From the NCBI GenBank assembly GCA_002104945.1, contig MCFH01000086.1, forward strand, positions 1 through 64,000: a DNA stretch of 64,000 nt, given 5' to 3'. Source of the DNA: Piromyces finnis finn (lineage: Eukaryota > Fungi > Neocallimastigomycota). Numbering within the stretch: the first letter of the stretch is position 1; every line of letters starts with the position of its first letter. The position numbers and the translations under genes are program-made. Below are positions 18,522 to 62,190 of the stretch, piece after piece. The notes beneath the pieces were generated by a model that was given only the letters and a program-made list of their open reading frames with translations, was not told where the DNA came from and ran no database searches.

Positions 18522-19931
<1,410 letters not shown>

Positions 19932-20413
19932 GCTGCTTAAATCTTTTGTAAAGATACCAAAATTTATAAAAATATTATTCTTTTTTGATATAATGAAAGG
20001 GAAAATTTAATATATGAAAAGAAAATAATATGAAGCAATAATAATAATAGCAAAACATGAAAAAATAATTAATTTTTGAACAAATGAAAATAATTAAAAA
20101 AAAAAAAAACAAATAACAAATAAAATACCAAAAAAAAGGAAAATAAACAAAAATAGTAAAAAAAATATTAAAAAGAAGTAAAAAAAAGTAAAAAAAAATA
20201 AAAAGTAAGAGTTTTTAATTAATAAAAAATAAAAAATAATAAATAAAAAATATAATAAAAAAAAATACAGAAAGAAGTGTTTAGATAAATTTTGTGTATT
20301 TATTTTTTTAATATTGAAGTATATTATTTTTTATTAAATTTATTTAATAATTATTAGTAATAATATAGAAGGTAGTAACAATAGTGAAAATGGTAATTTT
20401 AATTTAAATAAAT

Positions 20414-20443
20414 ATATAGTTATTTTGTGCTCATTCAAGAAGA
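20414..20443 (+). mobile_element. Older diverged RT-core fragment, left half (continues at 26721-26868)
   Basis: atatagttattttgtgctcattcaagaaga aligns to element atatagttatttgtgctccaacaagagga (DIVICAPTRG, just after FADD). It resumes after the poly(A) at 26721 as tcattcaagaagatgcttaaaaaagatgtttagg. Confidence 0.8.
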
Positions 20444-20543
20444 ATAACAATAATAGAAATAATAATATTAGTAATGATAGCAATAGTGAAGATAATAATT
20501 CTAATTTAGATAGTAATTTAGTTAATGATAGTAATAGTTCTAG

Positions 20544-20665
20544 CCCTCTTGGAAACGTGCCTTCATTTATTTAATAAATGTAGTTTCTCAAGGGGGTCTA
20601 CTCATGCTCATGGTACTGAGAGAGTAGGAAGAATTAAATCCAAGCATTGCGCAATGGATGCTTGG
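20544..20665 (+). repeat. 124-bp 5' UTR monomer (single in copy A, tandem at 27093-27340, partial plus full at 56473-56660)
   Basis: Unit ccctctt..ggaacgtgcc...gcaatggatgcttggtg. The period of 124 was measured between 27093 and 27217. Confidence 0.85.
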
Positions 20666-21307
20666 TTAGTCTTTAAGGGAAAATTATTAGGACTAAGCTC
20701 ATGGTACTGAGCGATTAAAAAACATTTATCCATCGAATTTAAGTATTTGATGAATAAGTTGAATGTTTGATATTCAGGTAAGTTTGTATAGTATTTAATT
20801 AGAAGAGTAATACATTTTGTTGCTGTATTTTTTCTTTTATTCATGTATTCATGTAGTACTACTCTTCTCTTGTAAGAATCCAATGTAGTCAACTTTAGCA
20901 TTTGCATTGTATTTTTATATTCATGTAGCTATTGTTGTATTGTTTCTTGTAAGAGACTGATTCACTCTACATCATGTAAAAATACTATTCACAAGCTTTC
21001 TGGTGTCGACATTCTTGATTCAAATTTTTTACCAATTTAAATATTTAATGAAAAGTAAGTCAAACAAGTTTAGTGTCAAAAAGCGAATCGAATTTACTAA
21101 CAACAAACCAAAACTAGAATTTTTAAAGAAAATTTACAACTAGAATTCAAAAAAAGAAACTTTAAACAAAGCATCGTAACAATTTTTGTACTATCCAGTA
21201 CTTTTAAGAAGAGAGAGAGAGACAGATTTTTTTTCCATATACGTTATATTTATAATTTTTATTAGTATTTATTTTATATTCAATATTTTTAATTAGAATT
21301 TATTATC

Positions 21308-24300
21308 ATGTCAGTCCTTTATATTAAAGACAAGAATTATATCAGACGTGGTACCCGGTCTTATGGTATCCCCTTAGATGATATTCGCTCCTTCTTTATC
21401 CGTGGTATTCGATCATGGTCAGTAAATATGCTATGGGAAAAACTCGAGGTTATTCTAGAAGATAAATTTAATTCAGTTATTAGTGTTAAATATTTTCAGA
21501 CTTTCAATGATCACTTTTTCTTAGTCAAGGTTCATGGTTCATCGAAAGATTGTATTAAAATCTTACACATGTTAAAGAAGAAACTTTCAGTTACCTCAAT
21601 TTCCTTTTCAGCTCGTAGTAGAAGGAATCACAAATACACTTTTTCCACTCTCAAACGTAAAATTTTAGTTTCTAATAAACATCAACATTCTATTCAACAA
21701 TCATTTCAACAATCAGTTCAACAATCTCATCAACAATCCGATCTTCAACTAGATCTTCAACAAGATCTTCAACAAGTTTCCAATCATGAAAATATTCCAG
21801 ATCTACAGCAAACACAATTTCAATCTCAACATTCAACAATTAATTCTAATAGCTCTATCAACTCTGATAACAGTTCAATAGTTGATAGTTCTTCAGTTTC
21901 ACAGCCATCTAGTAATAGTTCTACTTATTCCTCTGATGCATCATCCATTAATAACGATGACTTTAATAATAATAATAATAGCAACGATTCTTCCTCATCC
22001 AACAAGCCTGATAACTTTTCTTTTTGTCTTAGTTGGAACACCAATGGGTGGAATCACGAAAAGAGAGATAGTATTAGCTATTTCACAGCTATTTTCAAAC
22101 CATTATTTTTATGTTTCCAAGAAACTGGTAATGGTTCTGGATCGAATACAGATTATCCTTGTCGTGTTACTTTGCGAAACTATAGACACTTTTTCAAGAA
22201 AGCTGACGAATCAGTTCCGGGAATGAGAGGTTTATATTTAGGTTTTCACAATTCATGTCAAGCCTCACTTGAAAACTTCTCTGGAAAGTATATTATTTCT
22301 ATTTATACTTTTAGTCTCTGGAATAGATTCAAATGCTCGATTGGTAATGTTTATATGCCTCATAGTCATCACAACATCTATGTTGATCATGCAAAGTTAG
22401 AAGTTCGCTTGTGGTTACAAACTCATTCATCCCATCCATCGATTCTTGTTGGTGATTTTAATATGTCTAAAGTAAAATTATCCAACTGGTTATCAACTAA
22501 TGGATTAGGAGATTGGGAAATTCTTCCGCTTAGAGGGTCTACTATCTCTTGGACTCGAGGTGATCAATCTTCCGACATTGACCATGCTCTTATCAATTCG
22601 AAGATGAAAGATCTTATTCACTCAGGATCATTTATAAATAATTTTTATCCTGTATCAGACCATAAGCCACTTCTTATTAATGGTAAAATTATTCCTATGG
22701 AAGATTTTTCTAATGACTTTAATGTTCCTAAGAAAATTCTGAAATGGAATAGATTAAAATGTATTGAGGAAAAGGAATCTATTCTCAGTCATAATAAATT
22801 CCAAATACTTTCAGCTAAATCCAACGATCCTAATGTTTCTACAGATGAACTTTCCAAAGAGTTTACTTCAACTGCTTTTTCAATTGCAGACGAGCTCAGT
22901 ATTACTTCAGCAAATAATGTTATAAAGTCTTCATTTCATATTTCACAACAAATTTTTAATCTTCAAAAAATCAAAATGAAGTTGTATAAGAGATTTAAAA
23001 AAGAAAGAATTTATGATATAGATGAATTTATTAAAAGAATTAAAATCTACCGTAAACTCATTGATTACATCCACAAAAGATGTAATGAATTTAGGAAGCA
23101 AGAATATCTTCATTGGATTAAAACAGGATGTGAGTATATGAAGAGTCATAATCCTAAGAAGGCCTGGAAATGGATCAAGAAAACTGCAAAAATTGGAAAA
23201 GATTCTTTCTTTATTGCTCAACCAATTAAAAATAAAAATGGAGAATTAGTTGTTGCTACGGAAGAACAACTAGATGTGTGGCATGATCATTTCGAAAAGC
23301 TTGCATCAGATCCAAGTGGTGTAAGTCTTGATTTAGAGCATTGGTATGAAGAACCAATGAATAAACGTTTTTCACTTCCTATGCTTGATGAATGGGATAT
23401 CAACCAAGATATTAGTATTGATGAAGTCAAGTCAGCTATCCTCACTACTCCAAATTATAAAGCATCAGGTCCGGATGGTATTCCAATTGAATTTTACAAA
23501 GCATTAGTTCCATCAAGTAATGATTCTAATAATGCTACAGATAATAATTCTTCTGGTAATACTACTTCAGATAATGATGCTCATGGTTTAAATTTTATTC
23601 TTAAATTATTCAACCGTATTTGGGATGGAGATTTCCCCAACTCATGGAATGAATCCAGTATTGTTTCTATTCCTAAGAAGGGAGATTTGACAGATTGTGA
23701 TAACTATCGAGGTATATCACTTATCAATAATGGTATTAAGTTGATTTCCAAAATTGTCACCACTAGAATCTCAGAATATGGTTTAAAGAATAATTTCATT
23801 AGACCTGAACAATTTGGTTTTCGAAAAAAGGAAGAAAGTATTAGTCTTTTCATTTCAATCCAAGAAATATGCCGTAGACGTCAATTAGATAATAAAGAGA
23901 CATATTTGGCCTTTTTAGATCTCAGGAAAGCATACGATTCAGTCCCAATCGGTAATATTCTCCATAAATTAGATTGTTTAGGAATCCGAGGTAAGAGTTT
24001 ACAATTCATCAAAAATTTATATTTAACATCTAAGGCTAATGTCAAATTAGATGGACAATTCTCGAAATCTTTTGATGTGAAGAAAGGAGTCCGTCAAGGT
24101 TGCCCTCTTTCTCCTATTCTCTTTAATCTCTTTATTAATGATATATTTAGAGAGTGCGAAGATCTAGGAGTCAGTTTAGGTGACACTCGATGCTGTGGTG
24201 GACTTTTTGCAGATGATATAGTTATTTGTGCTCCAACAAGAGGATGCTTAAAAAAGATGCTTAGAAGAGTTAATGAATGGGCATTGTATAATGAAATGGA

Positions 24301-25831
24301 ATTTGGTATCCAGAAATGTTCAACGATGGTGATTCGTCCTGAATCAATAGAAAATCAGAACAAGAGAGATCCAACATTTTACTTAGCAGGACAACCCATT
24401 CCAACTACTGATTGTTATACTTATCTTGGTGTTCCATTTGATAAGAATTTGTCCCTTAAACCAGTAATTAAAGCTCTTAATAACAAGGTTTTGAAAGGGC
24501 TTTTCTCAGTCAGTAAATTCTTAAGAAATCCTAATATTCCTATTCCTTTCAAAAAACTAGTACTTAACTCACAAGTGATTAGCAGAGTTTCATACTTTGC
24601 ACCATTACTTGGATCCAACAAAGCTAGGTCTAGGATTGCTCAGAAGCATGTTAACAAAGGAATACGATGGGTTGCCGGAGTTCATAAAGCTGTATCGTTT
24701 ATATCTTTATACTCTATTTCAAAAGATTTGAATATTCCTCCATTGTCAGCCAAATGTGCGTTAGCTCAGGTTAGATGTTTTAACAAATGGAAAAACTCAA
24801 ATTGTATTATCTCACACCTTGTCAATTACATTCCTAAATTTAGAAAATACACGTGGTGCAAATCAAGTAGGACACTTGATAAAAAACTAAAGAAACATGG
24901 AGATGTTAAAGCAGTTAAAAACTTTTATTGGAAAGATCTCAAAGGGAATTCAATCAAAGCGCAATATTATGATGATAATAAATTTAGTGAAACTAAAGAT
25001 TTTATTAAATTATGTTATGAGTACCCAGAGTTTGCCTATGGCTTCTACTGGCTATTGAAAGCAAGAAGCGGATACAAGTTGGATGCTAGAGTTGCCAAAG
25101 CTGCTAAATTTGTTGATCCAGTTTGTCCTAACTACTGTCCATGTTGCAAGTGTGGAGATCAAAGTATTAAACATTGGTTATTAGATTGTCCAACATTTAG
25201 AGATATCCGTATTAAACATTATGATTCCATAGTCCAGCTATTAAATTTTTTCAGTCAACGTAATTCCAATAGTCCTATCAATAATAATGAAATTGATAAT
25301 ATCAGTAGAGATAGTAATAACATTAATAGTAATAGTAACAATAGTAATAGTAACAATAGTAATAGTAACAATAGTAATAGTAACAATAGTAATAATAACA
25401 ATAATAGAAATAATAATATTAGTAATGATAGCAATAGTGAAGATAATAATTCTAATTTAGATAGTAATTTAGTTAATGATAGTAATAGTTCTAATAATCC
25501 GGTGAATATTAATGTGTATGATTATTCTAGTGTGTGCAGTAAAATATTTAAATTCCTTCTTGGGGGAAGAAGTTTTAACAATATTAATTACAATTCAAGG
25601 GAATGGAAAGAACTTTGTAAGCGTCAGATTCAATCTGGTACTAATGAAGGAGCACCATTCTTGACGGTAACCGCGGAACTTCTAACCAAAATCATGCCTT
25701 TTGCTATTGGCCAGCAATGGTCAATGTTCAAAAGGTTTGAAGCAACATCCAAGAGCGTCAATGCTGAAGAAACAGTAAGACAGGCCAGGAGGGCCAGCGC
25801 AACCAATGGAGATCATAATTTTGTTCCATGA
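21308..25831 (+). CDS. Single-ORF polyprotein, 1507 aa: putative RRM, Q/S/N linker, AP endonuclease, reverse transcriptase, CCHC knuckle, Asn-rich tail
   Basis: APE motifs: SWNTNG, FQETG, VGDFN, SDIDHAL, VSDHKPL. RT motifs: KASGPDGIP, IPKKGD..DNYRGISL, EQFGFR, FLDLRKAYDSV, GVRQGCPLSPILFNLFI, LFADD, YTYLGV. C-terminal CPCCKCGDQSIKHWLLDC. No RNase H motif recognised. Confidence 0.95.
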   Translation: MSVLYIKDKNYIRRGTRSYGIPLDDIRSFFIRGIRSWSVNMLWEKLEVILEDKFNSVISVKYFQTFNDHFFLVKVHGSSKDCIKILHMLKKKLSVTSISFSARSRRNHKYTFSTLKRKILVSNKHQHSIQQSFQQSVQQSHQQSDLQLDLQQDLQQVSNHENIPDLQQTQFQSQHSTINSNSSINSDNSSIVDSSSVSQPSSNSSTYSSDASSINNDDFNNNNNSNDSSSSNKPDNFSFCLSWNTNGWNHEKRDSISYFTAIFKPLFLCFQETGNGSGSNTDYPCRVTLRNYRHFFKKADESVPGMRGLYLGFHNSCQASLENFSGKYIISIYTFSLWNRFKCSIGNVYMPHSHHNIYVDHAKLEVRLWLQTHSSHPSILVGDFNMSKVKLSNWLSTNGLGDWEILPLRGSTISWTRGDQSSDIDHALINSKMKDLIHSGSFINNFYPVSDHKPLLINGKIIPMEDFSNDFNVPKKILKWNRLKCIEEKESILSHNKFQILSAKSNDPNVSTDELSKEFTSTAFSIADELSITSANNVIKSSFHISQQIFNLQKIKMKLYKRFKKERIYDIDEFIKRIKIYRKLIDYIHKRCNEFRKQEYLHWIKTGCEYMKSHNPKKAWKWIKKTAKIGKDSFFIAQPIKNKNGELVVATEEQLDVWHDHFEKLASDPSGVSLDLEHWYEEPMNKRFSLPMLDEWDINQDISIDEVKSAILTTPNYKASGPDGIPIEFYKALVPSSNDSNNATDNNSSGNTTSDNDAHGLNFILKLFNRIWDGDFPNSWNESSIVSIPKKGDLTDCDNYRGISLINNGIKLISKIVTTRISEYGLKNNFIRPEQFGFRKKEESISLFISIQEICRRRQLDNKETYLAFLDLRKAYDSVPIGNILHKLDCLGIRGKSLQFIKNLYLTSKANVKLDGQFSKSFDVKKGVRQGCPLSPILFNLFINDIFRECEDLGVSLGDTRCCGGLFADDIVICAPTRGCLKKMLRRVNEWALYNEMEFGIQKCSTMVIRPESIENQNKRDPTFYLAGQPIPTTDCYTYLGVPFDKNLSLKPVIKALNNKVLKGLFSVSKFLRNPNIPIPFKKLVLNSQVISRVSYFAPLLGSNKARSRIAQKHVNKGIRWVAGVHKAVSFISLYSISKDLNIPPLSAKCALAQVRCFNKWKNSNCIISHLVNYIPKFRKYTWCKSSRTLDKKLKKHGDVKAVKNFYWKDLKGNSIKAQYYDDNKFSETKDFIKLCYEYPEFAYGFYWLLKARSGYKLDARVAKAAKFVDPVCPNYCPCCKCGDQSIKHWLLDCPTFRDIRIKHYDSIVQLLNFFSQRNSNSPINNNEIDNISRDSNNINSNSNNSNSNNSNSNNSNSNNSNNNNNRNNNISNDSNSEDNNSNLDSNLVNDSNSSNNPVNINVYDYSSVCSKIFKFLLGGRSFNNINYNSREWKELCKRQIQSGTNEGAPFLTVTAELLTKIMPFAIGQQWSMFKRFEATSKSVNAEETVRQARRASATNGDHNFVP

Positions 25832-26066
25832 CAAAATTTTGATCTTTGGCTCGGTGTCCCATTGGAAGTCAAATACAATTATTATACTTTAGTATGATAG
25901 TGGCTTTCTTACTTTAATTAAAATTACTAGAATACATTATACCCAATTTTTATTCATTTGTGTTTATTTAAACATATTTTTTTTATTTTTATTTTATTTT
26001 AATTTTTATATTTCATGTATTATAATTTTAATTAAATTAATAATAAAGTTTAAAATATTTGATGCC

Positions 26067-26106
<40 letters not shown>

Positions 26107-26687
26107 TAGTTCTAATAATCCGGTGAATATTAATGTGTATGATTATTCTAGTGTGTGCAGTAAAATATTTAAATTCCTTCTTGGGGGAAGAAGTTTTAAC
26201 AATATTAATTACAATTCAAGGGAATGGAAAGAACTTTGTAAGCGTCAGATTCAATCTGGTACTAACGAAGGAACACCATTCTTGACGGTAACCGCGGAAC
26301 TTCTAACCAAAATCATGCCTTTTGCTATTGGCCAGCAATGGTCAATGTTCAAAAGGTTTGAAGCAACATCCAAGAGCGTCAATGCTGAAGAAACAGTAAG
26401 ACAGGCCAGGAGGGCCAGCGCAACCAATGGAGATCATAATTTTGTTCCATGACAAAATTTTGATCTTTGGCTCGGTGTCCCATTGGAAGTCAAATACAAT
26501 TATTATACTTTAGTATGATAGTGGCTTTCTTACTTTAATTAAAATTACTAGAATACATTATACCCAAATTTTATTCATTTGTGTTTATTTAAACATATTT
26601 TTTTTATTTTTATTTTTATTTTTATTTTTTATTACATGTATTATAATTTTAATTAAATTAATAATAAAGTTTAAAATATTTGATGCC

Positions 26688-26720
<33 letters not shown>

Positions 26721-26724
<4 letters not shown>

Positions 26725-26868
26725 TCAAGAAGATGCTTAAAAAAGATGTTTAGGAGAGTTAATGAATGGGCTTTGTATAATGAAATGGAATTTGGTATTC
26801 AGAAATGTTCAACGATGGTGATTCGTCCTGAATCAATAGAAAATCAGAACAAGAGAGATCCAACATTT
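26721..26868 (+). mobile_element. Older diverged RT-core fragment, right half
   Basis: Matches element RT sequence CLKKM.RRVNEWALYNEMEFGIQKCSTMVIRPESIENQNKRDPTF. Both halves together differ from copy A by about 8 substitutions and 1 indel over about 165 nt (manual count). Confidence 0.88.
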
Positions 26869-26949
26869 ATAATTCTAATTTAGATAGTAATTTAGTTAAT
26901 GATAGTAACTTTAATTAAATTAATAATAAAGTTTAAAATATTTGATGCC

Positions 26950-26989
<40 letters not shown>

Positions 26990-27092
26990 ATAGTAACAGT
27001 TCTAATAATCCGGTGAATATTAATGTGTATGATTATTCTAGTGTGTGCAGTAAAATATTTAAATTCCTTCTTGGGGGAAGAAGTTTTAACAA
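26869..27092 (+). mobile_element. Internal fragment of the element Asn-rich/C-terminal region, interrupted by a mini-insertion
   Basis: ataattctaatttagatag...gatagtaac, then the insert, then agttctaataatccggtg...gaagttttaacaa. Near-identical to about 25446-25581. Confidence 0.85.
26910..26987 (+). mobile_element. Extremely 5'-truncated copy (about 43 nt of 3' end plus A35); 12-bp TSD AATGATAGTAAC
   Basis: tttaattaaattaataataaagtttaaaatatttgatgccgtt followed by poly(A). AATGATAGTAAC lies at 26898-26909 and 26986-26997; both carry a C where the consensus has T. Confidence 0.88.
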
Positions 27093-30000
27093 CCCTCTTG
27101 GGAACGTGCCTTCATTTATTTAATAAATGTAGTTTCTCAAGGGGGTCTACTCATGCTCATGGTACTGAGAGAGTAGAAAGAATTAAATCCAAGTATTGCG
27201 CAATGGATGCTTGGTGCCCTCTTAGGAATGTGCCTTCATTTATTTAATAAATGTAATTTCTCAAGGGGGTCTACTCATGCTCATGGTACTGAGAGAGTAG
27301 AAAGAATTAAATCCAAGCATTGCGCAATGGATGCTTGGTTAGTCTTCAAGGGAAAATTATTAGGACTAAGCTCATGGTACTGAGCGATTAAAAAACATTT
27401 TATTCATCAAATTTAAGTATTTGATGAATAAGTGAATGTTTGATTTTTCAGGTAAGTTTGTATAGTATTTAATTAGAAGAGTAATACATTTTGTTGCTGT
27501 ATTTTTTCTTTTATTCATGTATTCATGTAGTACTACTCTTCTCTTGTAAGAATCCAATGTAGTCAACTTTAGCATTTGCATTGTACTTTTATATTCATGT
27601 AGCTATTGTTGTATTGTTTCTTGTAAGAGACTGATTCACTCTACATCATGTAAAAATACTATTCACAAGCTTTCTGGTGTCGACATTCTTGATTCAAATT
27701 TTTTACCAATTTAAATATTTAATGAAAAGTAAAGTCAAACAAGTTTAGTGTCAAAAAGCGAATCGAATTTACTAACAACAAACCAAAACTAGAATTTTTA
27801 AAGAAAATTTACAACTAGAATTCAAAAAATAAGAAACTTTAAACAAAGCATCGTAACAATTTTTGTACTATCCAGTACTTTTAAGAAGAGAGAGAGAGAC
27901 AGATTTTTTTCCATATACGTTATATTTGTAATTTTTATTAGTATTTATTTTATATTCAATATTTTTTAATTAGAATTTATTATCATGTCAGTCCTTTATA
28001 TTAAAGATAAGAATTATATCAGACGTGGTACCCGGTCTTATGGTATCCCCTTAGATGATATTCGCTCCTTCTTTATCCGTGGTATTCGATCATGGTCAGT
28101 AAATATGCTATGGGAAAAACTCGAGGTTATTCTAGAAGATAAATTTAATTCAGTTATTAGTGTTAAATATTTTCAAACTTTCAATGATCAATTTTTCTTA
28201 GTCAAGGTTCATGGTTCATCAAAAGATTGTATTAAAATCTTACACATGTTAAAGAAGAAACTTTCAGTTACCTCAATTTCCTTTTCAGCTCGTAGTAGAA
28301 GGAATCACAAATACACTTTTTCCACTCTCAAACGTAAAATTTTAGTTTCTAATAAACATCAACATTCTATTCAACAATCATTTCAACAATCAGTTCAACA
28401 ATCAGTTCAACAATCTCATCAACAATCCGATCTTCAACGAGATCTTCAACAGGATCTTCAACAAGTTTCCCATCATGAAAATATTCCAGATCTACAGCAA
28501 ACACAATTTCAATCTCAACATTCAACAATTAATTCTAATAGTTCTATCAACTCTGATAACAGTTCAATAGTTGATAGTTCTTCAGTTTCACAGCCATCTA
28601 GTAATAGTTCTACTTATTCCTCTGATGCATCATCCATTAATAACGATGACTTTAATAATAATAATAATAGCAACGATTCTTCCTCATACAACAAGCCTGA
28701 TAACTTTTCTTTTTGTCTTAGTTGGAACACCAATGGGTGGAATCATGAAAAGAGAGATAGTATTAGCTATTTCACAGCTATTTTCAAACCATTATTCTTA
28801 TGTTTCCAAGAAACTGGTAATGGTTCTGGTTCGAATACAGATTATCCTTGTCGTGTTACTTTGCGAAACTATAGACACTTTTTCAAGAAAGCTGACGAAT
28901 CAGTTCCGGGAATGAGAGGTTTATATTTAGGTTTTCACAATTCGTGTCAAGCCTCACTTGAAAACTTCTCTGGAAAGTATATTATTTCTATTTATACTTT
29001 TAGTCTCTGGAATAGATTCAAATGCTCGATTGGAAATGTTTATATGCCTCATAGTCATCACAACATCTATGTTGATCATGCAAAGTTAGAAGTTCGCTTG
29101 TGGTTACAAACTCATTCATCCCATCCATCGATTCTTGTTGGTGATTTTAATATGTCTAAAGTAAAATTATCCAACTGGTTATCAACTAATGGATTAGGAG
29201 ATTGGGAAATTCTTCCGCTTAGAGGGTCTACTATCTCTTGGACTCGAGGTGAACAATCTTCCGACATTGACCATGCTCTTATCAATTCGAAGATGAAAGA
29301 TCTTATTCACTCAGGATCATTTATAAATAATTTTTATCCTGTATCAGACCATAAGCCACTTCTTATTAATGGTAAAATTATTCCTATGGAAGATTTTTCT
29401 AATGACTTTAACGTTCCTAAGAAAATTCTGAAATGGAATAGATTAAAATGTATTGAGGAAAAGGAATCTATTCTCAGTCATAATAAATTCCAAATACTTT
29501 CAGCAAAATTCAACGATCCTAATGTTTCTACAGATGAACTTTCCAAAGAGTTTACTTCAACTGCTTTTTCAATTGCAGACGAGCTCAGTATTACCTCAGC
29601 AAATAATGTTATAAAGTCTTCATTTCATATTTCACAACAAATTTTTAATCTCCAAAAAATCAAAATGAAGTTGTATAAGAGATTTAAAAAAGAAAGAATT
29701 TATGATATAGATGAATTTATTAAAAGAATTAAAATCTACCGTAAGCTCATTGATTACATCCACAAAAGATGTAATGAATTTAGGAAACAAGAATATCTTC
29801 ATTGGATTAAAACAGGATGTGAGTATATGAAGAGTCATAATCCTAAGAAGGCCTGGAAATGGATCAAGAAAACTGCAAAAATTGGAAAAGATTCTTTCTT
29901 TATTGCTCAACCAATTAAAAATAAAAATGGAGAATTAGTTGTTGCTACGGAAGAACAACTAGATGTGTGGCATGATCATTTCGAAAATCTTGCATCAGAT

Positions 30001-32755: not shown

Positions 32756-32794
<39 letters not shown>
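27093..32794 (+). mobile_element. Copy C: full-length with intact ORF (5' end at 27093, or at about 27217 if the first monomer belongs to copy D)
   Basis: Two 124-bp monomers, ORF 27985-32520, poly(A) 32759-32794. ATGCTTGGTG lies at 27207-27216 and 32794-32803. Confidence 0.93.
27985..32520 (+). CDS. Intact APE-RT polyprotein, 1511 aa
   Basis: Same motifs as copy A with FADD intact, plus one extra QQSV repeat. Confidence 0.95.
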   Translation: MSVLYIKDKNYIRRGTRSYGIPLDDIRSFFIRGIRSWSVNMLWEKLEVILEDKFNSVISVKYFQTFNDQFFLVKVHGSSKDCIKILHMLKKKLSVTSISFSARSRRNHKYTFSTLKRKILVSNKHQHSIQQSFQQSVQQSVQQSHQQSDLQRDLQQDLQQVSHHENIPDLQQTQFQSQHSTINSNSSINSDNSSIVDSSSVSQPSSNSSTYSSDASSINNDDFNNNNNSNDSSSYNKPDNFSFCLSWNTNGWNHEKRDSISYFTAIFKPLFLCFQETGNGSGSNTDYPCRVTLRNYRHFFKKADESVPGMRGLYLGFHNSCQASLENFSGKYIISIYTFSLWNRFKCSIGNVYMPHSHHNIYVDHAKLEVRLWLQTHSSHPSILVGDFNMSKVKLSNWLSTNGLGDWEILPLRGSTISWTRGEQSSDIDHALINSKMKDLIHSGSFINNFYPVSDHKPLLINGKIIPMEDFSNDFNVPKKILKWNRLKCIEEKESILSHNKFQILSAKFNDPNVSTDELSKEFTSTAFSIADELSITSANNVIKSSFHISQQIFNLQKIKMKLYKRFKKERIYDIDEFIKRIKIYRKLIDYIHKRCNEFRKQEYLHWIKTGCEYMKSHNPKKAWKWIKKTAKIGKDSFFIAQPIKNKNGELVVATEEQLDVWHDHFENLASDPSGVSLDLEHWYEEPTNKRFSLPMLDEWDINQDISIDEVKSAILSTPNYKASGPDGIPIEFYKALIPSSNDSNNATDNNSSGNTTSDNDAYGLNFILKLYNRIWDGDFPNSWNESSIVSIPKKGDLTDCDNYRGISLINNGIKLISKIVTTRISEYGLKNNFIRPEQFGFRKKEESISLFISIQEICRRRQLDNKETYLAFLDLRKAYDSVPIGNILHKLDCLGIRGKSLQFIKNLYLTSKANVKLDGQFSKSFDVKKGVRQGCPLSPILFNLFINDIFKECEDLGVSLGDTRCCGGLFADDIVICAPTRGCLKKMLRRVNEWALYNEMEFGIQKCSTMVIRPESIENQNKRDPTFYLAGQPIPTTDCYTYLGVPFDKNLSLKPVIKALNNKVLKGLFSVSKFLRNPNIPIPFKKLVLNSQVISRVSYFAPLLGSNKARSSIAQKHVNKGIRWVAGVHKAVSFISLYSISKDLNIPPLSAKCGLAQVRCFNKWKNSNCIISHLVNYIPKFRKYTWCKSSRTLDKKLKKHGDVKAVKNFYWKDLKGNSIKAQYYDDNKFIETKDFIKLCYEYPEFAYGFYWLLKARSGYKLDARVAKAAKFVDPVCPNYCPCCKCEDQSIKHWLLDCPTFRDIRIKHYDSIVQLLNFFSQRNSNSPINNNEIDNISRDSNNINSNSNNSSNNNSNSNNSNSNNSNNNNNRNNNISNDSNSEDNNSNLDSNLVNDSNSSNNPVNINVYDYSSVCSKIFKFLLGGRSFNNINYNSREWKELCKRQIQSDTNEGTPFLTVTAELLTKIMPFAIGQQWSMFKRFEATSKSVNAEETVRQARRASATNGDHNFVP

Positions 32795-32796
<2 letters not shown>

Positions 32797-35700
32797 CTTG
32801 GTGCCCTCTTAGGAACGTGCCTTCATTTATTTAATAATGGAGTTTATCAAGGGGTCTACTCATGCTCATGGTACTGAGAGAGTAGAAAGAATTAAATCCA
32901 AGCATTGCGCAATGGATGCTTGGTTAGTCTTTAAGGGAAAATTATTAGGACTAAGCTCATGGTACTGAGCGATTAAAAAACATTTTATTCATCGAATTAA
33001 GTATTTGATGAATAAGTTGAATGTTTGATATTCAGGTAAGTTTGTATAGTATTTAATTAGAAGAGTAATACATTTTGTTGCTGTATTTTTTCTTTTATTC
33101 ATGTATTCATGTAGTACTACTCTTCTCTTGTAAGAATCCAATGTAGTCAACTTTAGCATTTGCATTGTATTTTTATATTCATGTAGCTATTGTTGTATTG
33201 TTTCTTGTAAGAGACTGATTCACTCTACATCATGTAAAAATACTATTCACAAGCTTTCTGGTGTCGACATTCTTGATTCAAATTTTTTACCAATTTAAAT
33301 ATTTAATGAAAAGTAAAGTCAAACAAGTTTAGTGTCAAAAAGCGATTCGAATTTACTAACAACAAACCAAAACTAGAATTTTTAAAGAAAATTTACAACT
33401 AGAATTCAAAAAAAGAAACTTTAAACAAAGCATCGTAACAATTTTTGTACTATCCAGTACTTTTAAGAAGAGAGAGAGAGACAGATTTTTTTTCCATATA
33501 CGTTATATTTATAATTTTATTAGTATTTATTTTATATTCAATATTTTTAATTAGAATTTATTATCATGTCAGTCCTTTATATTAAAGACAAGAATTATAT
33601 CAGACGTGGTACCCGGTCTTATGGTATCCCCTTAGATGATATTCGCTCCTTCTTTATCCGTGGTATTCGATCATGGTCAGTAAATATGCTATGGGAAAAA
33701 CTCGAGGTTATTCTAGAAGATAAATTTAATTCAGTTATTAGTGTTAAATATTTTCAGACTTTCAATGATCACTTTTTCTTAGTCAAGGTTCATGGTTCAT
33801 CGAAAGATTGTATTAAAATCTTACACATGTTAAAGAAGAAACTTTCAGTTACCTCAATTTCCTTTTCAGCTCGTAGTAGAAGGAATCACAAATACACTTT
33901 TTCCACTCTCAAACGTAAAATTTTAGTTTCTAATAAACATCAACATTCTATTCAACAATCATTTCAACAATCAGTTCAACAATCTCATCAACAATCCGAT
34001 CTTCAACTAGATCTTCAACAAGATCTTCAACAAGTTTCCAATCATGAAAATATTCCAGATCTACAGCAAACACAATTTCAATCTCAACATTCAACAATTA
34101 ATTCTAATAGTTCTATCAACTCTGATAACAGTTCAATAGTTGATAGTTCTTCAGTTTCACAGCCATCTAGTAATAGTTCTACTTATTCCTCTGATGCATC
34201 ATCCATTAATAACGATGACTTTAATAATAATAATAATAGCAACGATTCTTCCTCATCCAACAAGCCTGATAACTTTTCTTTTTGTCTTAGTTGGAACACC
34301 AATGGGTGGAATCACGAAAAGAGAGATAGTATTAGCTATTTCACAGCTATTTTCAAACCATTATTTTTATGTTTCCAAGAAACTGGTAATGGTTCTGGTT
34401 CGAATACAGATTATCCTTGTCGTGTTACTTTGCGAAACTATAGACACTTTTTCAAGAAAGCTGACGAATCAGTTCCGGGAATGAGAGGTTTATATTTAGG
34501 TTTTCACAATTCATGTCAAGCCTCACTTGAAAACTTCTCTGGAAAGTATATTATTTCTATTTATACTTTTAGTCTCTGGAATAGATTCAAATGCTCGATT
34601 GGTAATGTTTATATGCCTCATAGTCATCACAACATCTATGTTGATCATGCAAAGTTAGAAGTTCGCTTGTGGTTACAAACTCATTCATCCCATCCATCGA
34701 TTCTTGTTGGTGATTTTAATATGTCTAAAGTAAAATTATCCAACTGGTTATCAACTAATGGATTAGGAGATTGGGAAATTCTTCCGCTTAGAGGGTCTAC
34801 TATCTCTTGGACTCGAGGTGATCAATCTTCCGACATTGACCATGCTCTTATCAATTCGAAGATGAAAGATCTTATTCACTCAGGATCATTTATAAATAAT
34901 TTTTATCCTGTATCAGACCATAAGCCACTTCTTATTAATGGTAAAATTATTCCTATGGAAGATTTTTCTAATGACTTTAATGTTCCTAAGAAAATTCTGA
35001 AATGGAATAGATTAAAATGTATTGAGGAAAAGGAATCTATTTCAGTCATAATAAATTCCAAATACTTTCAGCAAAATCCAACGATCCTAATGTTTCTACA
35101 GATGAACTTTCCAAAGAGTTTACTTCAACTGCTTTTTCAATTGCAGACGAGCTCAGTATTACTTCAGCAAATAATGTTATAAAGTCTTCATTTCATATTT
35201 CACAACAAATTTTTAATCTTCAAAAAATCAAAATGAAGTTGTATAAGAGATTTAAAAAAGAAAGAATTTATGATATAGATGAATTTATTAAAAGAATTAA
35301 AATCTACCGTAAACTCATTGATTACATCCACAAAAGATGTAATGAATTTAGGAAGCAAGAATATCTTCATTGGATTAAAACAGGATGTGAGTATATGAAG
35401 AGTCATAATCCTAAGAAGGCCTGGAAATGGATCAAGAAAACTGCAAAAATTGGAAAAGATTCTTTCTTTATTGCTCAACCAATTAAAAATAAAAATGGAG
35501 AATTAGTTGTTGCTACGGAAGAACAACTAGATGTGTGGCATGATCATTTCGAAAATCTTGCATCAGACCCAAGTGGTGTAAGTCTTGATTTGGAGCATTG
35601 GTATGAAGAACCAATGAATAAACGTTTTTCACTTCCTATGCTTGATGAGTGGGATATCAACCAAGATATTAGTATTGATGAAGTCAAGTCAGCTATCCTC

Positions 35701-38321
35701 ACTACTCCAAATTATAAAGCATCAGGTCCGGATGGTATTCCAATTGAATTTTACAAAGCATTAGTTCCATCAAGTAATGATTCTAATAATGCTACAGATA
35801 ATAATTCTTCTGGTAATACTACTTCAGATAATGATGCTCATGGTTTAAATTTTATTCTTAAATTATTCAACCGTATTTGGGATGGAGATTTCCCCAACTC
35901 ATGGAATGAATCCAGTATTGTTTCTATTCCTAAGAAGGGAGATTTGACAGATTGTGATAACTATCGAGGTATATCACTTATCAATAATGGTATTAAGTTG
36001 ATTTCCAAAATTGTCACCACTAGAATCTCAGAATATGGTTTAAAGAATAATTTCATTAGACCTGAACAATTTGGTTTTCGAAAAAAGGAAGAAAGTATTA
36101 GTCTTTTCATTTCAATCCAAGAAATATGCCGTAGACGTCAATTAGATAATAAAGAGACATATTTGGCCTTTTTAGATCTCAGGAAAGCATACGATTCAGT
36201 CCCAATCGGTAATATTCTCCATAAATTAGATTGTTTAGGAATCCGAGGTAAGAGTCTACAATTTATCAAAAATTTATATTTAACATCTAAGGCTAATGTC
36301 AAATTAGATGGACAATTCTCGAAATCTTTTGATGTGAAGAAAGGAGTCCGTCAAGGATGCCCTCTTTCTCCTATTCTCTTTAATCTCTTTATTAATGATA
36401 TATTTAGAGAGTGCGAAGATCTAGGAGTCAGTTTAGGTGACACTCGATGCTGTGGTGGACTTTTTGCAGATGATATAGTTATTTGTGCTCCAACAAGAGG
36501 ATGCTTAAAAAAGATGCTTAGAAGAGTTAATGAATGGGCATTGTATAATGAAATGGAATTTGGTATCCAGAAATGTTCAACGATGGTGATTCGTCCTGAA
36601 TCAATAGAAAATCAGAACAAGAGAGATCCAACATTTTACTTAGCAGGACAACCCATTCCAACTACTGATTGTTATACTTATCTTGGTGTTCCATTTGATA
36701 AGAATCTGTCCCTTAAACCAGTTATTAAAGCTCTTAATAACAAGGTTTTGAAAGGGCTTTTCTCAGTCAGTAAATTCTTAAGAAATCCTAATATTCCTAT
36801 TCCTTTCAAAAAACTAGTACTTAACTCACAAGTGATTAGCAGAGTTTCATACTTTGCACCATTACTTGGATCCAACAAAGCTAGGTCTAGGATTGCTCAG
36901 AAGCATGTTAACAAAGGAATACGATGGGTTGCCGGAGTTCATAAAGCTGTATCGTTTATATCTTTATACTCTATTTCAAAAGATTTGAATATTCCTCCAT
37001 TGTCAGCCAAATGTGCGTTAGCTCAGGTTAGATGTTTTAACAAATGGAAAAACTCAAATTGTATTATCTCAACCTTGTCAATTACATTCCTAAATTTAGA
37101 AAATACACGTGGTGCAAATCAAGTAGGACACTTGATAAAAAACTAAAGAAACATGGAGATGTTAAAGCAGTTAAAAACTTTTATTGGAAAGATCTCAAAG
37201 GGAATTCAATCAAAGCGCAATATTATGATGATAATAAATTTATTGAAACTAAAGATTTTATTAAATTATGTTATGAGTACCCAGAGTTTGCCTATGGCTT
37301 CTACTGGCTATTGAAAGCAAGAAGCGGATACAAGTTGGATGCTAGAGTTGCCAAAGCTGCCAAATTTGTTGATCCAGTTTGTCCTAACTACTGTCCATGT
37401 TGCAAGTGTGGGTTCAAAGTATTAAACATTGGTTATTAGATTGTCCAACATTTAGAGATATCCGTATTAAACATTATGATTCCATAGTCCAGCTATTAAA
37501 TTTTTTCAGTCAACGTAATTCCAATAGTCCTATCAATAATAATGAAATTGATAATATCAGTAGAGATAGCAATAACATTAATAGTAATAGTAACAATAGT
37601 AGTAATAACAATAGTAATAGTAACAATAGTAATAGTAACAATAGTAATAATAACAATAATAGAAATAATAATATTAGTAATGATAGCAATAGTGAAGATA
37701 ATAATTCTAATTTAGATAGTAATTTAGTTAATGATAGTAATAGTTCTAATAATCCGGTGAATATTAATGTGTATGATTATTCTAGTGTGTGCAGTAAAAT
37801 ATTTAAATTCCTTCTTGGGGGAAGAAGTTTTAACAATATTAATTACAATTCAAGGGAATGGAAAGAACTTTGTAAGCGTCAGATTCAATCTGGTACTAAC
37901 GAAGGAACACCATTCTTGACGGTAACCGCGGAACTTCTAACCAAAATCATGCCTTTTGCTATTGGCCAGCAATGGTCAATGTTCAAAAGGTTTGAAGCAA
38001 CATCCAAGAGCGTCAATGCTGAAGAAACAGTAAGACAGGCCAGGAGGGCCAGCGCAACCAATGGAGATCATAATTTTGTTCCATGACAAAATTTTGATCT
38101 TTGGCTCGGTGTCCCATTGGAAGTCAAATACAATTATTATACTTTAGTATGATAGTGGCTTTCTTACTTTAATTAAAATTACTAGAATACATTATACCCA
38201 ATTTTTATTCATTTGTGTTTATTTAAACATATTTTTTTTATTTTTATTTATTTTTAATTTTTTTATTACATGTATTATAATTTTAATTAAATTAATAATA
38301 AAGTTTAAAATATTTGATGCC

Positions 38322-38362
<41 letters not shown>
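32794..38362 (+). mobile_element. Copy D: full-length with three frameshifts
   Basis: Follows the copy C poly(A) directly. ORF pieces 33566-35182, 35233-37146, 37044-37439 and 37397-38086. Poly(A) 38325-38362. Confidence 0.93.
33566..38086 (+). pseudogene. Frameshifted APE-RT ORF of copy D
   Basis: Single-base deletions near 35041 (tctatttcag vs tctattctcag), 37071 (ctcaacc vs ctcacacc) and 37411 (tgtgggttc vs tgtggtgttc). These may be real or sequencing errors. Confidence 0.8.
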
Positions 38363-38364
<2 letters not shown>

Positions 38365-41300
38365 TTATTCTAGAAGATAAATTTAATTCAGTTATTAGTG
38401 TTAAATATTTTCAGACTTTCAATGATCACTTTTTCTTAGTCAAGGTTCATGGTTCATCAAAAGATTGTATTAAAATCTTACACATGTTAAAGAAGAAACT
38501 TTCAGTTACCTCAATTTCCTTTTCAGCTCGTAGTAGAAGGAATCACAAATACACTTTTTCCACTCTCAAACGTAAAATTTTAGTTTCTAATAAACATCAA
38601 CATTCTATTCAACAATCATTTCAACAATCAGTTCAACAATCTCATCAACAATCCGATCTTCAACAAGATCTTCAACAAGATCTTCAACAAGTTTCCCATC
38701 ATGAAAATATTCCAGATCTACAGCTAACACAATTTCAATCTCAACATTCAACAATTAATTCTAATAGTTCTATCAACTCAAATAACAGTTCAATAGTTGA
38801 TAGTTCTTCAGCTTCACAGCCATCTAGTAATAGTTCTACTTATTCCTCTGATGCATCATCCATTAATAACGATGACTTTAATAATAATAATAATAGCAAC
38901 GATTCTTCCTCATCCAACAAGCCTGATAACTTTTCTTTTTGTCTTAGTTGGAACACCAATGGGTGGAATCACGAAAAGAGAGATAGTATTAGCTATTTCA
39001 CAGCTATTTTCAAACCATTATTTTTATGTTTCCAAGAAACTGGTAATGGTTCTGGTTCGAATACAGATTATCCTTGTCGTGTTACTTTGCGAAACTATAG
39101 ACACTTTTTCAAGAAAGCTGACGAATCAGTTCCTGGAATGAGAGGTTTATATTTAGGTTTTCACAATTCGTGTCAAGCCTCACTTGAAAACTTCTCTGGA
39201 AAGTATATTATTTCTATTTATACTTTTAGTCTCTGGAATAGATTCAAATGCTCGATTGGAAATGTTTATATGCCTCATAGTCATCACAACATCTATGTTG
39301 ATCATGCAAAGTTAGAAGTTCGCTTGTGGTTACAAACTCATTCATCCCATCCATCGATTCTTGTTGGTGATTTTAATATGTCTAAAGTAAAATTATCCAA
39401 CTGGTTATCAACTAATGGATTAGGAGATTGGGAAATTCTTCCGCTTAGAGGATCTACTATCTCTTGGACTCGAGGTGATCAATCTTCCGACATTGACCAT
39501 GCTCTTATCAATTCGAAGATGAAAGATCTTATTCACTCAGGATCATTTATAAATAATTTTTATCCTGTATCAGACCATAAGCCTCTTCTTATTAATGGTA
39601 AAATTATTCCTATGGAAGATTTTTCTAATGACTTTAATGTTCCTAAGAAAATTCTGAAATGGAATAGATTAAAATGTATTGAGGAAAAGGAATCTATTCT
39701 CAGTCATAATAAATTCCAAATACTTTCAGCAAAATCCAACGATCCTAATGTTTCTACAGATGAACTTTCCAAAGAGTTTACTTCAACTGCTTTTTCAATT
39801 GCAGACGAGCTCAGTATTACCTCAGCAAATAATGTTATAAAGTCTTCATTTCATATTTCACAACAAATTTTTAATCTTCAAAAAATCAAAATGAAGTTGT
39901 ATAAGAGATTTAAAAAAGAAAGAATTTATGATATAGATGAATTTATTAAAAGAATTAAAATCTACCGTAAACTCATTGATTACATCCACAAAAGATGTAA
40001 TGAATTTAGGAAGCAAGAATATCTTCATTGGAGTAAAACAGGATGTGAGTATATGAAGAGTCATAATCCTAAGAAGGCCTGGAAATGGATCAAGAAAACT
40101 GCAAAAATTGGAAAAGATTCTTTCTTTATTGCTCAACCAATTAAAAATAAAAATGGAGAATTAGTTGTTGCTACAGAAGAACAACTTGAAGTGTGGCATG
40201 ATCATTTCGAAAACCTTGCATCAGATCCAAGTGGTGTAAGTCTTGATTTGGAGCATTGGTATGAAGAACCAATGAATAAACGTTTTTCACTTCCTATGCT
40301 TGATGAGTGGGATATCAACCAAGATATTAGTATTGATGAAGTCAAGTCAGCTATCCTCACTACTCCAAATTATAAAGCATCAGGTCCGGATGGTATTCCA
40401 ATTGAATTTTACAAAGCATTAATTCCATCAAGTAATGATTCTAATAATGCTACAGATAATAATTCTTCCGGTAATACTACTTCAGATAATGATGCTCATG
40501 GTTTAAATTTTATTCTTAAATTATTCAACCGTATTTGGGATGGAGACTTCCCCAACTCATGGAATGAATCCAGTATTGTTTCTATTCCTAAGAAGGGAGA
40601 TTTGACAGATTGTGATAACTATCGAGGTATATCACTTATCAATAATGGCATTAAGTTGATTTCCAAAATTGTCACCACTAGAATCTCAGAATATGGTCTA
40701 AAGAATAATTTCATTAGACCTGAACAATTTGGTTTTCGAAAAAAGGAAGAAAGTATCAGTCTTTTCATTTCAATCCAAGAAATATGCCGTAGACGTCAAT
40801 TAGATAATAAAGAGACATATTTGGCCTTTTTAGATCTCAGGAAAGCATACGATTCAGTCCCAATCGGTAATATTCTCCATAAATTAGATTGTTTAGGAAT
40901 CCGAGGTAAGAGTTTACAATTTATCAAAAATTTATATTTAACATCTAAGGCTAATGTCAAATTAGATGGACAATTCTCGAAATCTTTTGATGTGAAGAAA
41001 GGAGTCCGTCAAGGTTGCCCTCTTTCTCCTATTCTCTTTAATCTCTTTATTAATGATATATTTAAAGAGTGTGAAGATCTCGGAGTCAGTTTAGGTGACA
41101 CTCGATGCTGTGGTGGACTTTTTACAGATGATATAGTTATTTGTGCTCCAACAAGAGGATGCTTAAAAAAGATGCTTAGAAGAGTTAATGAATGGGCATT
41201 GTATAATGAAATGGAATTTGGTATCCAGAAATGTTCAACGATGGTGATTCGTCCTGAATCAATAGAAAATCAGAACAAGAGAGGTCCAACATTTTACTTA

Positions 41301-43011
41301 GCAGGACAACCCATTCCAACTACTGACTGCTACACTTATCTTGGTGTTCAATTTGATAAGAATCTGTCCCTTAAACCAGTTATTAAAGCTCTTAATAACA
41401 AGGTTTTGAAAGGGCTTTTCTCAGTCAGTAAATTCTTAAGAAATCCTAATATTCCTATTCCTTTCAAAAAACTAGTACTTAACTCTCAAGTGATTAGCAG
41501 AGTTTCATACTTTGCACCATTACTTGGATCCAACAAAGCTAGGTCTAGGATTGCTCAGAAGCATGTTAACAAAGGAATACGATGGGTTGCCGGAGTTCAT
41601 AAAGCTGTATCGTTTATATCTTTATACTCTATTTCAAAAGATTTGAATATTCCTCCATTGTCAGCCAAATGTGGGTTAGCTCAGGTTAGATGTTTTAACA
41701 AATGGAAAAACTCAAATTGTATTATCTCATACCTTGTCAATTACATTCCTAAATTTAGAAAATACACGTGGTGCAAATCAAGTAGGACACTTGATAAAAA
41801 ACTAAAGAAACATGGAGATGTTAAAGCAGTTAAAAACTTTTATTGGAAAGATCTCAAAGGGAATTCAATCAAAGCGCAATATTATGATGATAATAAATTT
41901 ATTGAAACTAAAGATTTTATTAAATTATGTTATGAGTACCCAGAGTTTGCCTATGGCTTCTACTGGCTATTGAAAGCAAGAAGCGGATACAAATTGGATG
42001 CTAGAGTTGCCAAAGCTGCTAAGTTTGTTAATCCAATTTGTCCTAACTACTGTCCATGTTGCAAGTGTGGTGTTCAAAGTATTAAACATTGGTTATTAGA
42101 TTGTCCAACATTTAGAGATATCCGTATTAAACATTATGATTCTATAGTCCATCTATTAAATTTTTTCATTCAACGTAATTCCAATAGTCCTATCAATAAT
42201 AATGAAATTGATAGTATCAGCAGAGATAGCAATAACAGTAATAATAATAATAATAACAATAGTAATAATAACAATAGTAATAGTAACAATAGTAATAATA
42301 ACAATAGTAATAGTAACAATAGTAATAATAACAATAGTAGTAATAGAAATAATAATATTAGTAATGATAGCAATAGTGATGATAATAATTCTAATTTAGA
42401 TAGTAATTTAGTTAATGATAGTAATAGTTCTAATAATCCGGTGAATATTAATGTGTATGATTATTCTAGTGTGTGCAGTAAAATATTTAAATTCCTTCTT
42501 GGGGAAGAAGTTTTAACAATATCAATTACAATTCAAGGGAATGGAAAGAACTTTGCAAGTGTCAGATTCAATCTGGTACTAACGAAGGAACACCATTCTT
42601 GACGGTAACCGCGGAACTTTTAACCAAAATCATGCCTTTTGCTATTGGCCAGCAATGGTCAATGTTCAAAAGGTTTGAAGCAACATTCAAGAGCGTAAAT
42701 GCTGAAGAAACATTAAGACAAGCCAGGAGGGCCAGCGCAACCAATGGAGATCATAATTTTGTTCCATGACAAAATTTTGATCTTTGGCTCGGTGTCCCAT
42801 TGGAAGTCAAATACAATTATTATACCTTAGTATAATAGTGGCTTTCTTACTTTTATTAAAATTACTAGAATACATTATACCCAATTTTTATTCATTTGTG
42901 TTTATTTAAACATATTTTTTTTATTTTTTTATTTTTTTTTTATAACATGTATTATAATTTTATTTAAATTAATAATAAAGTTTAAAAATATTTGATACCA
43001 TTAAAAAAAAA
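38363..43011 (+). mobile_element. Copy E: 5'-truncated, more diverged, short A9 tail
   Basis: Begins at ggttattctagaag (about codon 47-48 of the ORF) right after the copy D poly(A). FTDD instead of FADD (41124-41126), a G-run one base short at 42501-42504, a different Asn-repeat array, and 3' end tttgataccatt-A9. Confidence 0.92.
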
Positions 43012-43634: not shown

Positions 43635-43760
<126 letters not shown>

Positions 43761-44015: not shown

Positions 44016-47437
<3,422 letters not shown>

Positions 47438-62096: not shown

Positions 62097-62190
62097 TTTT
62101 AGTTTTATTATCTTTTATTAATTTTGATGATAAATAATGAATAAAAATTTAATTTTAAATATAGTAAATAGTAACAAAGTAAATTATTTT

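Follow-up and report, generated by a model that had tools for sequence, protein, structure and literature searches.

Co-oriented stacking of a LINE retrotransposon behind the actin gene of Piromyces finnis and its preference for the downstream flanks of genes

Introduction

Retrotransposons in compact genomes survive by means of safe sites, and the known ones are tRNA genes, rDNA, telomeres and other repeats. In the fungus Piromyces finnis (Neocallimastigomycota), a stretch of 64,000 nucleotides (GenBank assembly GCA_002104945.1, contig MCFH01000086.1, positions 1 to 64,000 of the forward strand; hereafter the window) holds a pile of copies of a long interspersed nuclear element (LINE) downstream of an actin gene. 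The element-derived DNA occupies positions 20414–43011, its first base lies at +483 from the actin stop codon (distances with a plus sign are counted from that stop), and all pieces belong to one family and run on the plus strand. This locus raises the question of what brings so many copies to one place in one orientation. A first-pass annotation had read it as a conveyor-like array, in which repeated insertion into a fixed gene-proximal zone keeps intact copies next to actin and pushes decayed copies outwards, apparent self-targeting being a by-product.

We consider it fairly probable that the stack is a pile of at least eight insertions of one young LINE with a single open reading frame (ORF) and an apurinic/apyrimidinic endonuclease (APE), together with an unrelated repeat R, in a zone that is set by the transcription unit and that carries a coarse age polarity. 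The preference of the family for integration about 0.4–1.0 kb past the stop codon, in the orientation of the gene, is shown statistically, and the mechanism proposed for it below is one that we infer.

Integration downstream of genes

The genome holds 545 3' ends of the element, as counted with a 31-nt 3'-end pattern whose reversed control gave 0 matches, and roughly 400 5' ends. Young full-length copies were sampled with a whole-element probe and a 5' untranslated region (UTR) probe, each locus was oriented on the element, and about 1.25 kb upstream was inspected. The 27 evaluable independent loci include the two of the window, and distance was taken from the gene stop to the 5' end of the newest copy. 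A co-oriented gene stop lies 386–986 bp upstream at 25 of the 27 (median 652, interquartile range 541–734), an opposite-strand gene lies upstream at none of them (orientation test, p=6e-8), and 19 of 24 distances fall within a 375-bp band (p=9e-7). The one locus that looked like an opposite-strand exception was rejected, because the frame in question is antisense to a xylose isomerase gene (residues 294–437 of 437, E=2e-86). On the other side, only 2 of 16 loci have a gene in the 1.25 kb downstream of the element (Fisher p=1.6e-7). Such a narrow distance and fixed orientation at many independent loci speak for position-specific integration directed by the transcription unit. The repeated insertion into a fixed gene-proximal zone that had been proposed for actin is thus upheld by evidence independent of the window.

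Twenty-two of the upstream genes were verified as protein C-termini by Pfam or PDB matches. They encode EF1A, RPS4, RPS9, RPL18, eIF5A, a DEAD-box helicase, an HSP70 ending in HDEL, HSP20, actin, TCP-1, GH1, xylose isomerase, two CBM10 proteins, two transporters, saccharopine dehydrogenase, acetyl-CoA hydrolase, adenylosuccinate lyase, an RRM protein, a zinc-finger protein and a chitin-binding protein. Genes for translation, chaperones and the cytoskeleton make up 10 of 25 hosts, and many of the host genes are among the most highly expressed in eukaryotes. The positions thus lie behind genes expected to be heavily transcribed, and sometimes directly behind tRNA genes.

A co-oriented tRNA gene is present upstream at four of the 32 loci scanned, namely L047 (948–1030, Leu), L063 (2593–2665, Ala), L064 (1095–1176, Ser) and L058 (2701–2783, Leu). 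At three of the four, the LINE or its stub starts 36–86 bp behind the tRNA gene, and the fourth has a short copy in between. Such an association of four young copies with tRNA genes is far above chance. All four loci also lie 545–919 bp behind a protein-coding gene. There is no tRNA gene in the window, no other known RNA gene (Rfam) was found near the sampled loci, and the 150–400 bp upstream of the insertions contain no B box. Pure targeting to tRNA genes or RNA polymerase III (Pol III) units was rejected, since most loci, like the window, have no tRNA or Rfam RNA and no B box.

Local sequence does not mark the insertion sites either. No shared motif was found in the target-site duplications (TSDs) or in the upstream 150 bp, and no 7–8-mer is common to them beyond A/T runs. 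A sequence-specific LINE of the R1/R2/Tx1 type was rejected as a model, the TSDs being all different. In the upstream flanks of 24 loci, A makes up about 50% of the sense strand at −400 to −200; over the final 150 bp its share is about 38%, and G and T are commoner there. This drop in A content ahead of the insertion site may mark the end of the transcript region.

The same pattern of positions could be the residue of purifying selection on random integration into AT-rich DNA of a compact haploid genome. The TSDs are AT-rich and without consensus, insertions into genes and promoters would be purged, and harm may be least where an element lies behind a gene in the sense orientation. However, the sampled copies are nearly identical (0–1.6 unique substitutions per kb), so that selection on mild effects has had little time to act. 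Neither the 375-bp band nor the lack of any locus with an opposite-strand gene upstream fits this explanation, and the enrichment of hosts for translation, chaperone and cytoskeleton genes is not predicted by selection alone. The young copies behind tRNA genes at four loci argue in the same direction, as does the actin site, which in another species is occupied by a different LINE. We regard selection as an improbable source of the pattern as a whole.

Chimeric retrocopies, which would arise by switching of the reverse transcriptase (RT) from LINE RNA to abundant mRNAs, were also considered and rejected. At copy F of the window and at L001, L004 and L006, the TSDs enclose the LINE alone. Retrocopies are also unlikely because the actin and TCP-1 genes of the window appear to have introns.

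Stacking is a property of the family. Among the 100 3' ends listed of the 545, there are 26 neighbouring pairs within 7 kb, all on the same strand and 0 on opposite strands, against an expectation of about 6.5 in total (p=3e-8); 40 of these 100 ends sit in stacks. One stack of eight copies lies behind the HSP70 gene ending in HDEL. Three successive 3' ends in that stack (C1:1538274–1541134) are spaced 942, 943 and 945 bp apart, a regularity that suggests a short copy amplified in tandem through unequal exchange, as opposed to separate insertions.

The element family

The family belongs to the APE-type non-LTR retrotransposons, or LINEs (LTR, long terminal repeat). A full copy of about 5.6 kb consists of one or more 123-bp 5' monomers, a 5' UTR of about 650–770 nt, a single ORF of about 1510 aa, a short 3' UTR and an A-tail of 30–38 residues. 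The ORF carries an APE endonuclease, an RT and a weak match to zf-RVT, while an N-terminal region of roughly 240 aa matches no Pfam family. The RT domain matches Pfam RVT_1 with E=1e-35 in copies A, C, D and E of the window. The endonuclease lies N-terminal to it and was detected as Exo_endo_phos (E=9e-7) in the first ORF fragment of D; relatives carry PF03372. The nearest named RT relatives are from Orpinomyces and Neocallimastix. Poly-A tails of A9 to A38, eight AT-rich TSDs of about 10–15 bp, all different, and 5'-truncated pieces (B, the mini copy, X1, X2 and E in the window) show that integration occurs by target-primed reverse transcription.

The number of 123-bp monomers varies from 1 in A to 2 in C and about 1.5 in F, and those of the window lie at 20543–20666, 27093–27339, 32803–32924 and 56473–56658; at L009 (889–1499), whole and half monomers form arrays. 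Such variable monomers look similar to the monomeric promoters of mouse L1. Certain 5' ends recur among the copies, namely the monomer start, monomer position ~56 and a point 8–10 nt ahead of the monomer boundary, which suggests several transcription start sites.

Structure of the actin stack

The gene-proximal part of the stack is nested. The stub X1a (20414–20442), with whose first base the alignment to the RT region of C begins, is a remnant of the oldest LINE piece. The left TSD of B lies within it, and the 5' part of B (20443–20542), whose last 13 nt are the left TSD of A, follows. The full-length copy A (20543–26101) has one monomer, an intact 1507-aa ORF (21308–25831) and an A33 tail, and its 5' UTR is 100% identical to that of 4 other genomic copies. 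Behind A lies the 3' part of B (26102–26720), which opens with the right TSD of A and closes with an A30 tail; B as a whole is a 5'-truncated copy of about 706 bp. X1b (26721–26868), the remainder of X1, begins with the right TSD of B and continues with RT-region sequence (95.8% over 143 bp). X2 (26869–27092) is a 136-bp stub of the Asn-rich end of the ORF, 99% identical to young copies, which is split into 26869–26909 and 26998–27092 by an 88-bp mini copy flanked by a TSD (26910–26987, with an A35 tail). All of these pieces are on the plus strand, as are the following ones.

Three nestings are proven by TSDs, and all of them lie at +500 to +688. B sits inside X1, with the TSD TCATTCAAGAAG at 20431–20442 and 26721–26732 (+500–511). 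A sits inside B, with AGTAATAGTTCTA at 20530–20542 and 26102–26114 (+599–611). The mini copy sits inside X2, with (AA)TGATAGTAAC at 26898–26909 and 26988–26997 (+677–688 after subtraction of the younger blocks, which measure 6290 bp for B plus A and 88 bp for the mini copy).

The distal part consists of three large copies that abut one another. C (27093–32794) is full-length, with two monomers, an intact 1511-aa ORF (27985–32520) and an A36 tail, and nine genomic copies align to it end to end at 99.3%. D (32795–38362) begins 8 nt ahead of the monomer boundary, has three private 1-bp deletions at about 35042, 37072 and 37412, none of them in a homopolymer run, and ends in an A38 tail. E (38363–43011) is a mosaic that is 5'-truncated, starting from element position ~1032. 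Its RT carries the motif FTDD, one base is missing near the end of the ORF, and the tail is A9. At the C/D and D/E junctions, the tail is joined directly to the next 5' end and there is no TSD.

Much of the first-pass annotation was reproduced, including the location of the stack, its single co-oriented family, the tails of 30–38 A against the A9 of E, the three frameshifts of D and the intact ORFs of A and C. Its arithmetic, which subtracted 6290 and 88 bp to place target sites at +500–512, +599–611, +677–688 and about +784, was recovered to within 1 nt. The position at +784 stands, but it had been taken for a 5' junction between D and C, and 27093 is the 5' end of C itself. C was thus not inserted into D, as had been supposed, since 27093–27215 is base for base monomer 1 of seven other two-monomer copies of the C subfamily. 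The further target at +898–907 does not exist, D beginning at 32795, and the 8 nt TGCTTGGT that had been interpreted as a TSD there are a recurrent 5' end, seen also in the TSD-flanked copy L005 and at C151:552770. The premise of the subtraction, that inner insertions came later, is secured by TSDs for A, B and the mini copy and is circular for C, D and E. The order of these three is underivable within the array because abutting copies always collapse to one point.

The array might instead be an assembly artefact or the product of tandem duplication by unequal crossing-over. The three 1-bp deletions of D set against a single unique substitution do resemble long-read consensus errors, and the periodic spacing of 942–945 bp in the HSP70 array possibly reflects unequal exchange. 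Yet the copies carry subfamily-diagnostic differences (1.37% between A and C, 1.15% between C and D), they differ in their 5' ends and tail lengths, and three TSD pairs enclose nested copies. An origin other than serial insertion is therefore highly improbable for the actin stack.

Beyond E lies R (43012–43765, plus strand), an unrelated older repeat of about 550 bp (43012–43561) followed by (AAAT)n, with at least 40 genomic copies at 77–82% identity. It starts 0–2 bp after the tail of E. Elsewhere, R is found on the same strand 73–800 bp downstream of LINE 3' ends, and an R-like stub (L052, 922–995) precedes the HSP70 stack. R is possibly an older retroposon that exploits the same niche as the LINEs. 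A 74-bp similarity between 43163–43236 and L052 was rejected as a general landing motif, as it belongs to R.

Genes and composition of the window

The last large exon of actin occupies 18849–19931 on the plus strand (Pfam Actin, E=5e-144, profile positions 15–410 of 410), and the stop codon of the ORF ends at 19931. The 3' flank (19932–20413) is unique DNA, A-rich at first and then T-richer, orthologous to the flank in a related-species contig, and it contains no tRNA or Rfam match. Older LINE remains in this flank were sought by sensitive BLAST and rejected, the only matches being of low complexity and not above shuffled controls. On the far side, the intergenic region that holds the stack is closed by a convergent DEAH-type helicase gene, with an exon at 44937–45215 on the minus strand (Pfam HA2_N and HA2_C, the HA2 domains). 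A TCP-1/cpn60 chaperonin gene has its last exons at 54355–55775 on the plus strand (Pfam Cpn60_TCP1, E=3e-71; stop ending at 55775). Copy F (56473–62096, plus strand), a solo copy of the same family, starts 698 bp past that stop in the orientation of the gene. It is flanked by the TSD TTTTAGTTTTATT (56460–56472 and 62097–62109) and carries FTDD, two frameshifting indels and one stop codon. GC content is low, at 13–20% between genes and about 30% in genes and elements, which makes the genome very AT-rich.

Ages of the copies

Substitutions unique to each copy were counted against 13 other copies. They amount to 0.18 per kb in D, 0.88 in C, 1.8 in A, 1.8 in F and 9.9 in E, the values for A and F being upper bounds since their own subfamily mates are absent from the set. 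C differs from A, D, E and F at 33 positions, with 16 synonymous against 7 non-synonymous changes where 77% non-synonymous would be expected (p=3e-6). These differences are common to the subfamily of C and are therefore lineage markers and not decay. D was either defective at birth or owes its deletions to consensus errors in the assembly.

E is a mosaic that is old only in its last 1 kb. Its private substitutions number 17 in the first 3.35 kb and 34 in the last 1.06 kb (p=1e-10), their density rises about six-fold near alignment column 4500–4750, and the last kilobase has no genomic relative above 96%. Three consecutive synonymous changes at codons 1039–1041 of E look like a gene-conversion tract. 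Of the signs of decay that had been listed for E, the 5' truncation, the diverged 3' end and the A9 tail stand. FTDD was rejected as such a sign, as the solo copy F has it too; the difference lies in the YXDD motif, at its variable X.

Of all LINE pieces in the stack, X1, the stub nearest to actin, is the most diverged, with about 94% identity to young copies. The graded age series A < C < D < E that had been read from the integrity of the copies accordingly finds no support, as divergence does not follow integrity and the oldest piece lies next to the gene. In our reading, a young set (A, B, X2, the mini copy, C, D and the 5' part of E) is enclosed by an old shell, which consists of the X1 stub together with the 3' part of E, and R follows outside this shell. 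The age polarity is real but coarse, and there is no gradient. One founder copy may have supplied both X1 and the old part of E as its two halves, a reading that would need recombination between direct repeats.

Other arrays show a related polarity. A strongly diverged neighbour (75–94% identity) lies downstream of a younger copy in 7 of 7 cases (L001, L007, L008, L037, C158, C161 and the C1 stack). The expectation that polarity would recur elsewhere holds in these cases and is reversed at L055 and L068. The rule that downstream copies are older is not absolute.

Gene-anchored zone or resident copies

Stubs left by nested insertion come from scattered parts of the element, with source positions at 483–698, 1272–1296, 2442–2510, 2606–2728, 4952–5039, 5072–5178 and 5267–5322, and at one locus, L052, the stub upstream of the new copy derives from R. 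About 21 kb of distal element DNA in the actin stack, including four further Asn-rich stretches, is without a nested insertion. Insertions at +500 to +688 but none in the distal DNA fit a gene-anchored zone and not homing to sequence. The view that self-targeting is a by-product is thus sustained, by stubs from at least seven element positions and by distal element DNA free of nested copies.

The gene might nevertheless place the founder only, with later copies homing to resident tails, 5' ends or the Asn-rich stretch, so that the stack could grow in either direction. The direct joins of tails to 5' ends without TSDs speak for such homing. Furthermore, A and the mini copy struck the same 20-bp Asn-rich stretch in two different copies, and at L005 a young copy lies within the last 25 bp of an older one, with the TSD ATAATAAAGCTT. 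D appears no older than C, and older-looking copies lie upstream at L055 and L068. On the other hand, the stub positions are scattered across the whole element, and no insertion has struck the Asn-rich region in A, C, D or E, only in B and X2, which lay in the gene-proximal zone. The tail of E abuts R just as exactly; since the E/R join connects unrelated families, homology is unnecessary and is not the cause of exact abutment. Single insertions in unique DNA follow the same rule of distance and orientation. Stacking driven by the resident elements is unlikely on this evidence, though less so than selection.

Several points weigh against a zone set by the transcription unit. The three joins without TSDs in the stack (C/D, D/E and E/R) have at least five counterparts elsewhere (L003, L007, L008, L055 and C151:552770), several at monomer position ~56, and such abutments are not predicted by a nick that is purely defined by distance. 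The distal copy D carries 1 unique substitution against 5 in C, a difference that is not significant (p=0.11), and at L055 and L068 a copy of 97% identity lies upstream of one of ~100% identity. The missing 3' remainders of X1 and X2 require extra events, for which recombination between direct repeats is assumed. One subfamily and best-scoring hits predominate in the locus sample, the expression levels of the hosts are judged from gene identity alone, and purifying selection could contribute to the bias in position and orientation.

The actin flank in other species

A metagenome contig from a related species (ENA; L070) contains the orthologous actin end and flank, with 81% identity over 895 bp; positions 19521–20396 of the window align to L070 1–857 at 81%. 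In this contig (L070 1–6900), an intact-looking LINE starts at about +450–520 past the actin stop, and its protein is 45% identical to that of the window family. Behind it comes a piece of a closer family that is truncated at its 5' end and contains an in-frame stop, so that the order is like that of the window, an intact copy being proximal and a decayed copy distal. Different LINEs lie behind the actin orthologs; therefore, two diverged LINE lineages have used the same spot.

In Neocallimastix (L069 10001–14950), a GH5 cellulase (stop at 11773) and a co-oriented LINE RT fragment from 12994 are merged in one public gene model. The fragment lies 1.2 kb downstream of the cellulase, an anecdotal case with biased ascertainment. 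Several A-runs of 10–29 A between the two may be tails of small copies.

Proposed mechanism

Under the gene-anchored explanation, the zone would be fixed by the adjacent transcription unit and not by local sequence, and the cue would be something at the termination or 3'-end region of active units. It would follow that later copies land inside or beside resident copies. Each new copy would then leave a short gene-side stub and push the bulk of the older copies away from the gene. We tentatively suggest, with somewhat less than even confidence, that the integration complex recognises the ends of heavily transcribed units, mostly of RNA polymerase II (Pol II) and less often of tRNA genes, that it inserts in the sense direction, and that this behaviour is conserved in anaerobic gut fungi. 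Conservation is proposed because the 45%-identical LINE holds the same actin spot in another species.

Comparison with known systems

The closest analogues appear to be the TRE elements of Dictyostelium, especially TRE3, which in every case sits about 100 bp behind a tRNA gene (PMC5006619). TRE3 and TRE5 resemble the present family in being APE-type LINEs of a compact AT-rich genome whose position is set by the neighbouring transcription unit and which pile up (PMC5006619). In contrast to TRE3, the present LINE mostly lies 0.4–1 kb behind Pol II genes with no tRNA, B box or Rfam RNA nearby, and its copies do not regularly lie downstream of tRNA genes at a distance of about 15–300 bp. TRE elements have two ORFs, whereas the present LINE has one ORF and 123-bp 5' monomers.

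Non-LTR elements of Drosophila form tandem dimers by double insertion at one site, with a copy of the TSD in the junction (McGurk and Barbash 2018, PMC5932611). Those dimers share with the present stack the tail-to-head and tail-to-internal joins of co-oriented copies with different 5' truncations, and repeated insertion in the same place. However, the C/D, D/E and E/R joins have no TSD, and the present stacking is family-wide (40% of the sampled 3' ends) and tied to gene ends. HeT-A, TART and TAHRE of Drosophila also build head-to-tail co-oriented arrays, which grow at one fixed end and have older truncated copies further in. They are attached to the terminus of chromosomes, whereas the present stack is internal and flanked by genes and has at least three insertions with ordinary TSDs. 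A telomeric array was rejected, with actin on one side, the helicase gene on the other and nested copies flanked by TSDs. Ty3, DGLT-A and other Pol III-directed retrotransposons, and Tf1 at Pol II promoters, are likewise sharply positioned on one side of genes by tethering to the transcription machinery. These are LTR elements that use an integrase and insert upstream of their targets, in contrast to the target-primed LINE, which inserts downstream and in the sense direction.

A literature search turned up no work on LINE targeting in Neocallimastigomycota and none on LINEs that are directed to the 3' flanks of Pol II genes. As far as could be found, targeting to gene ends is a principle undescribed for non-LTR retrotransposons.

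Implications

Targeting to gene ends is the interesting result of this locus. The conveyor idea from which the analysis started is partly supported, its core holding and its details being wrong. The rule accounts for co-oriented LINE stacks behind housekeeping and cellulosome genes, and it calls for caution in annotation, where models such as the Neocallimastix cellulase–RT fusion join a gene to a LINE. Each stack is also a natural dated record of successive insertions at one locus. If the explanation is true, a LINE that reads a busy gene end and inserts in the same direction would represent a new class of safe haven. It would also suggest that target-primed reverse transcription is physically linked to transcription termination or to chromatin at 3' ends, a link that would be testable in a culturable fungus.

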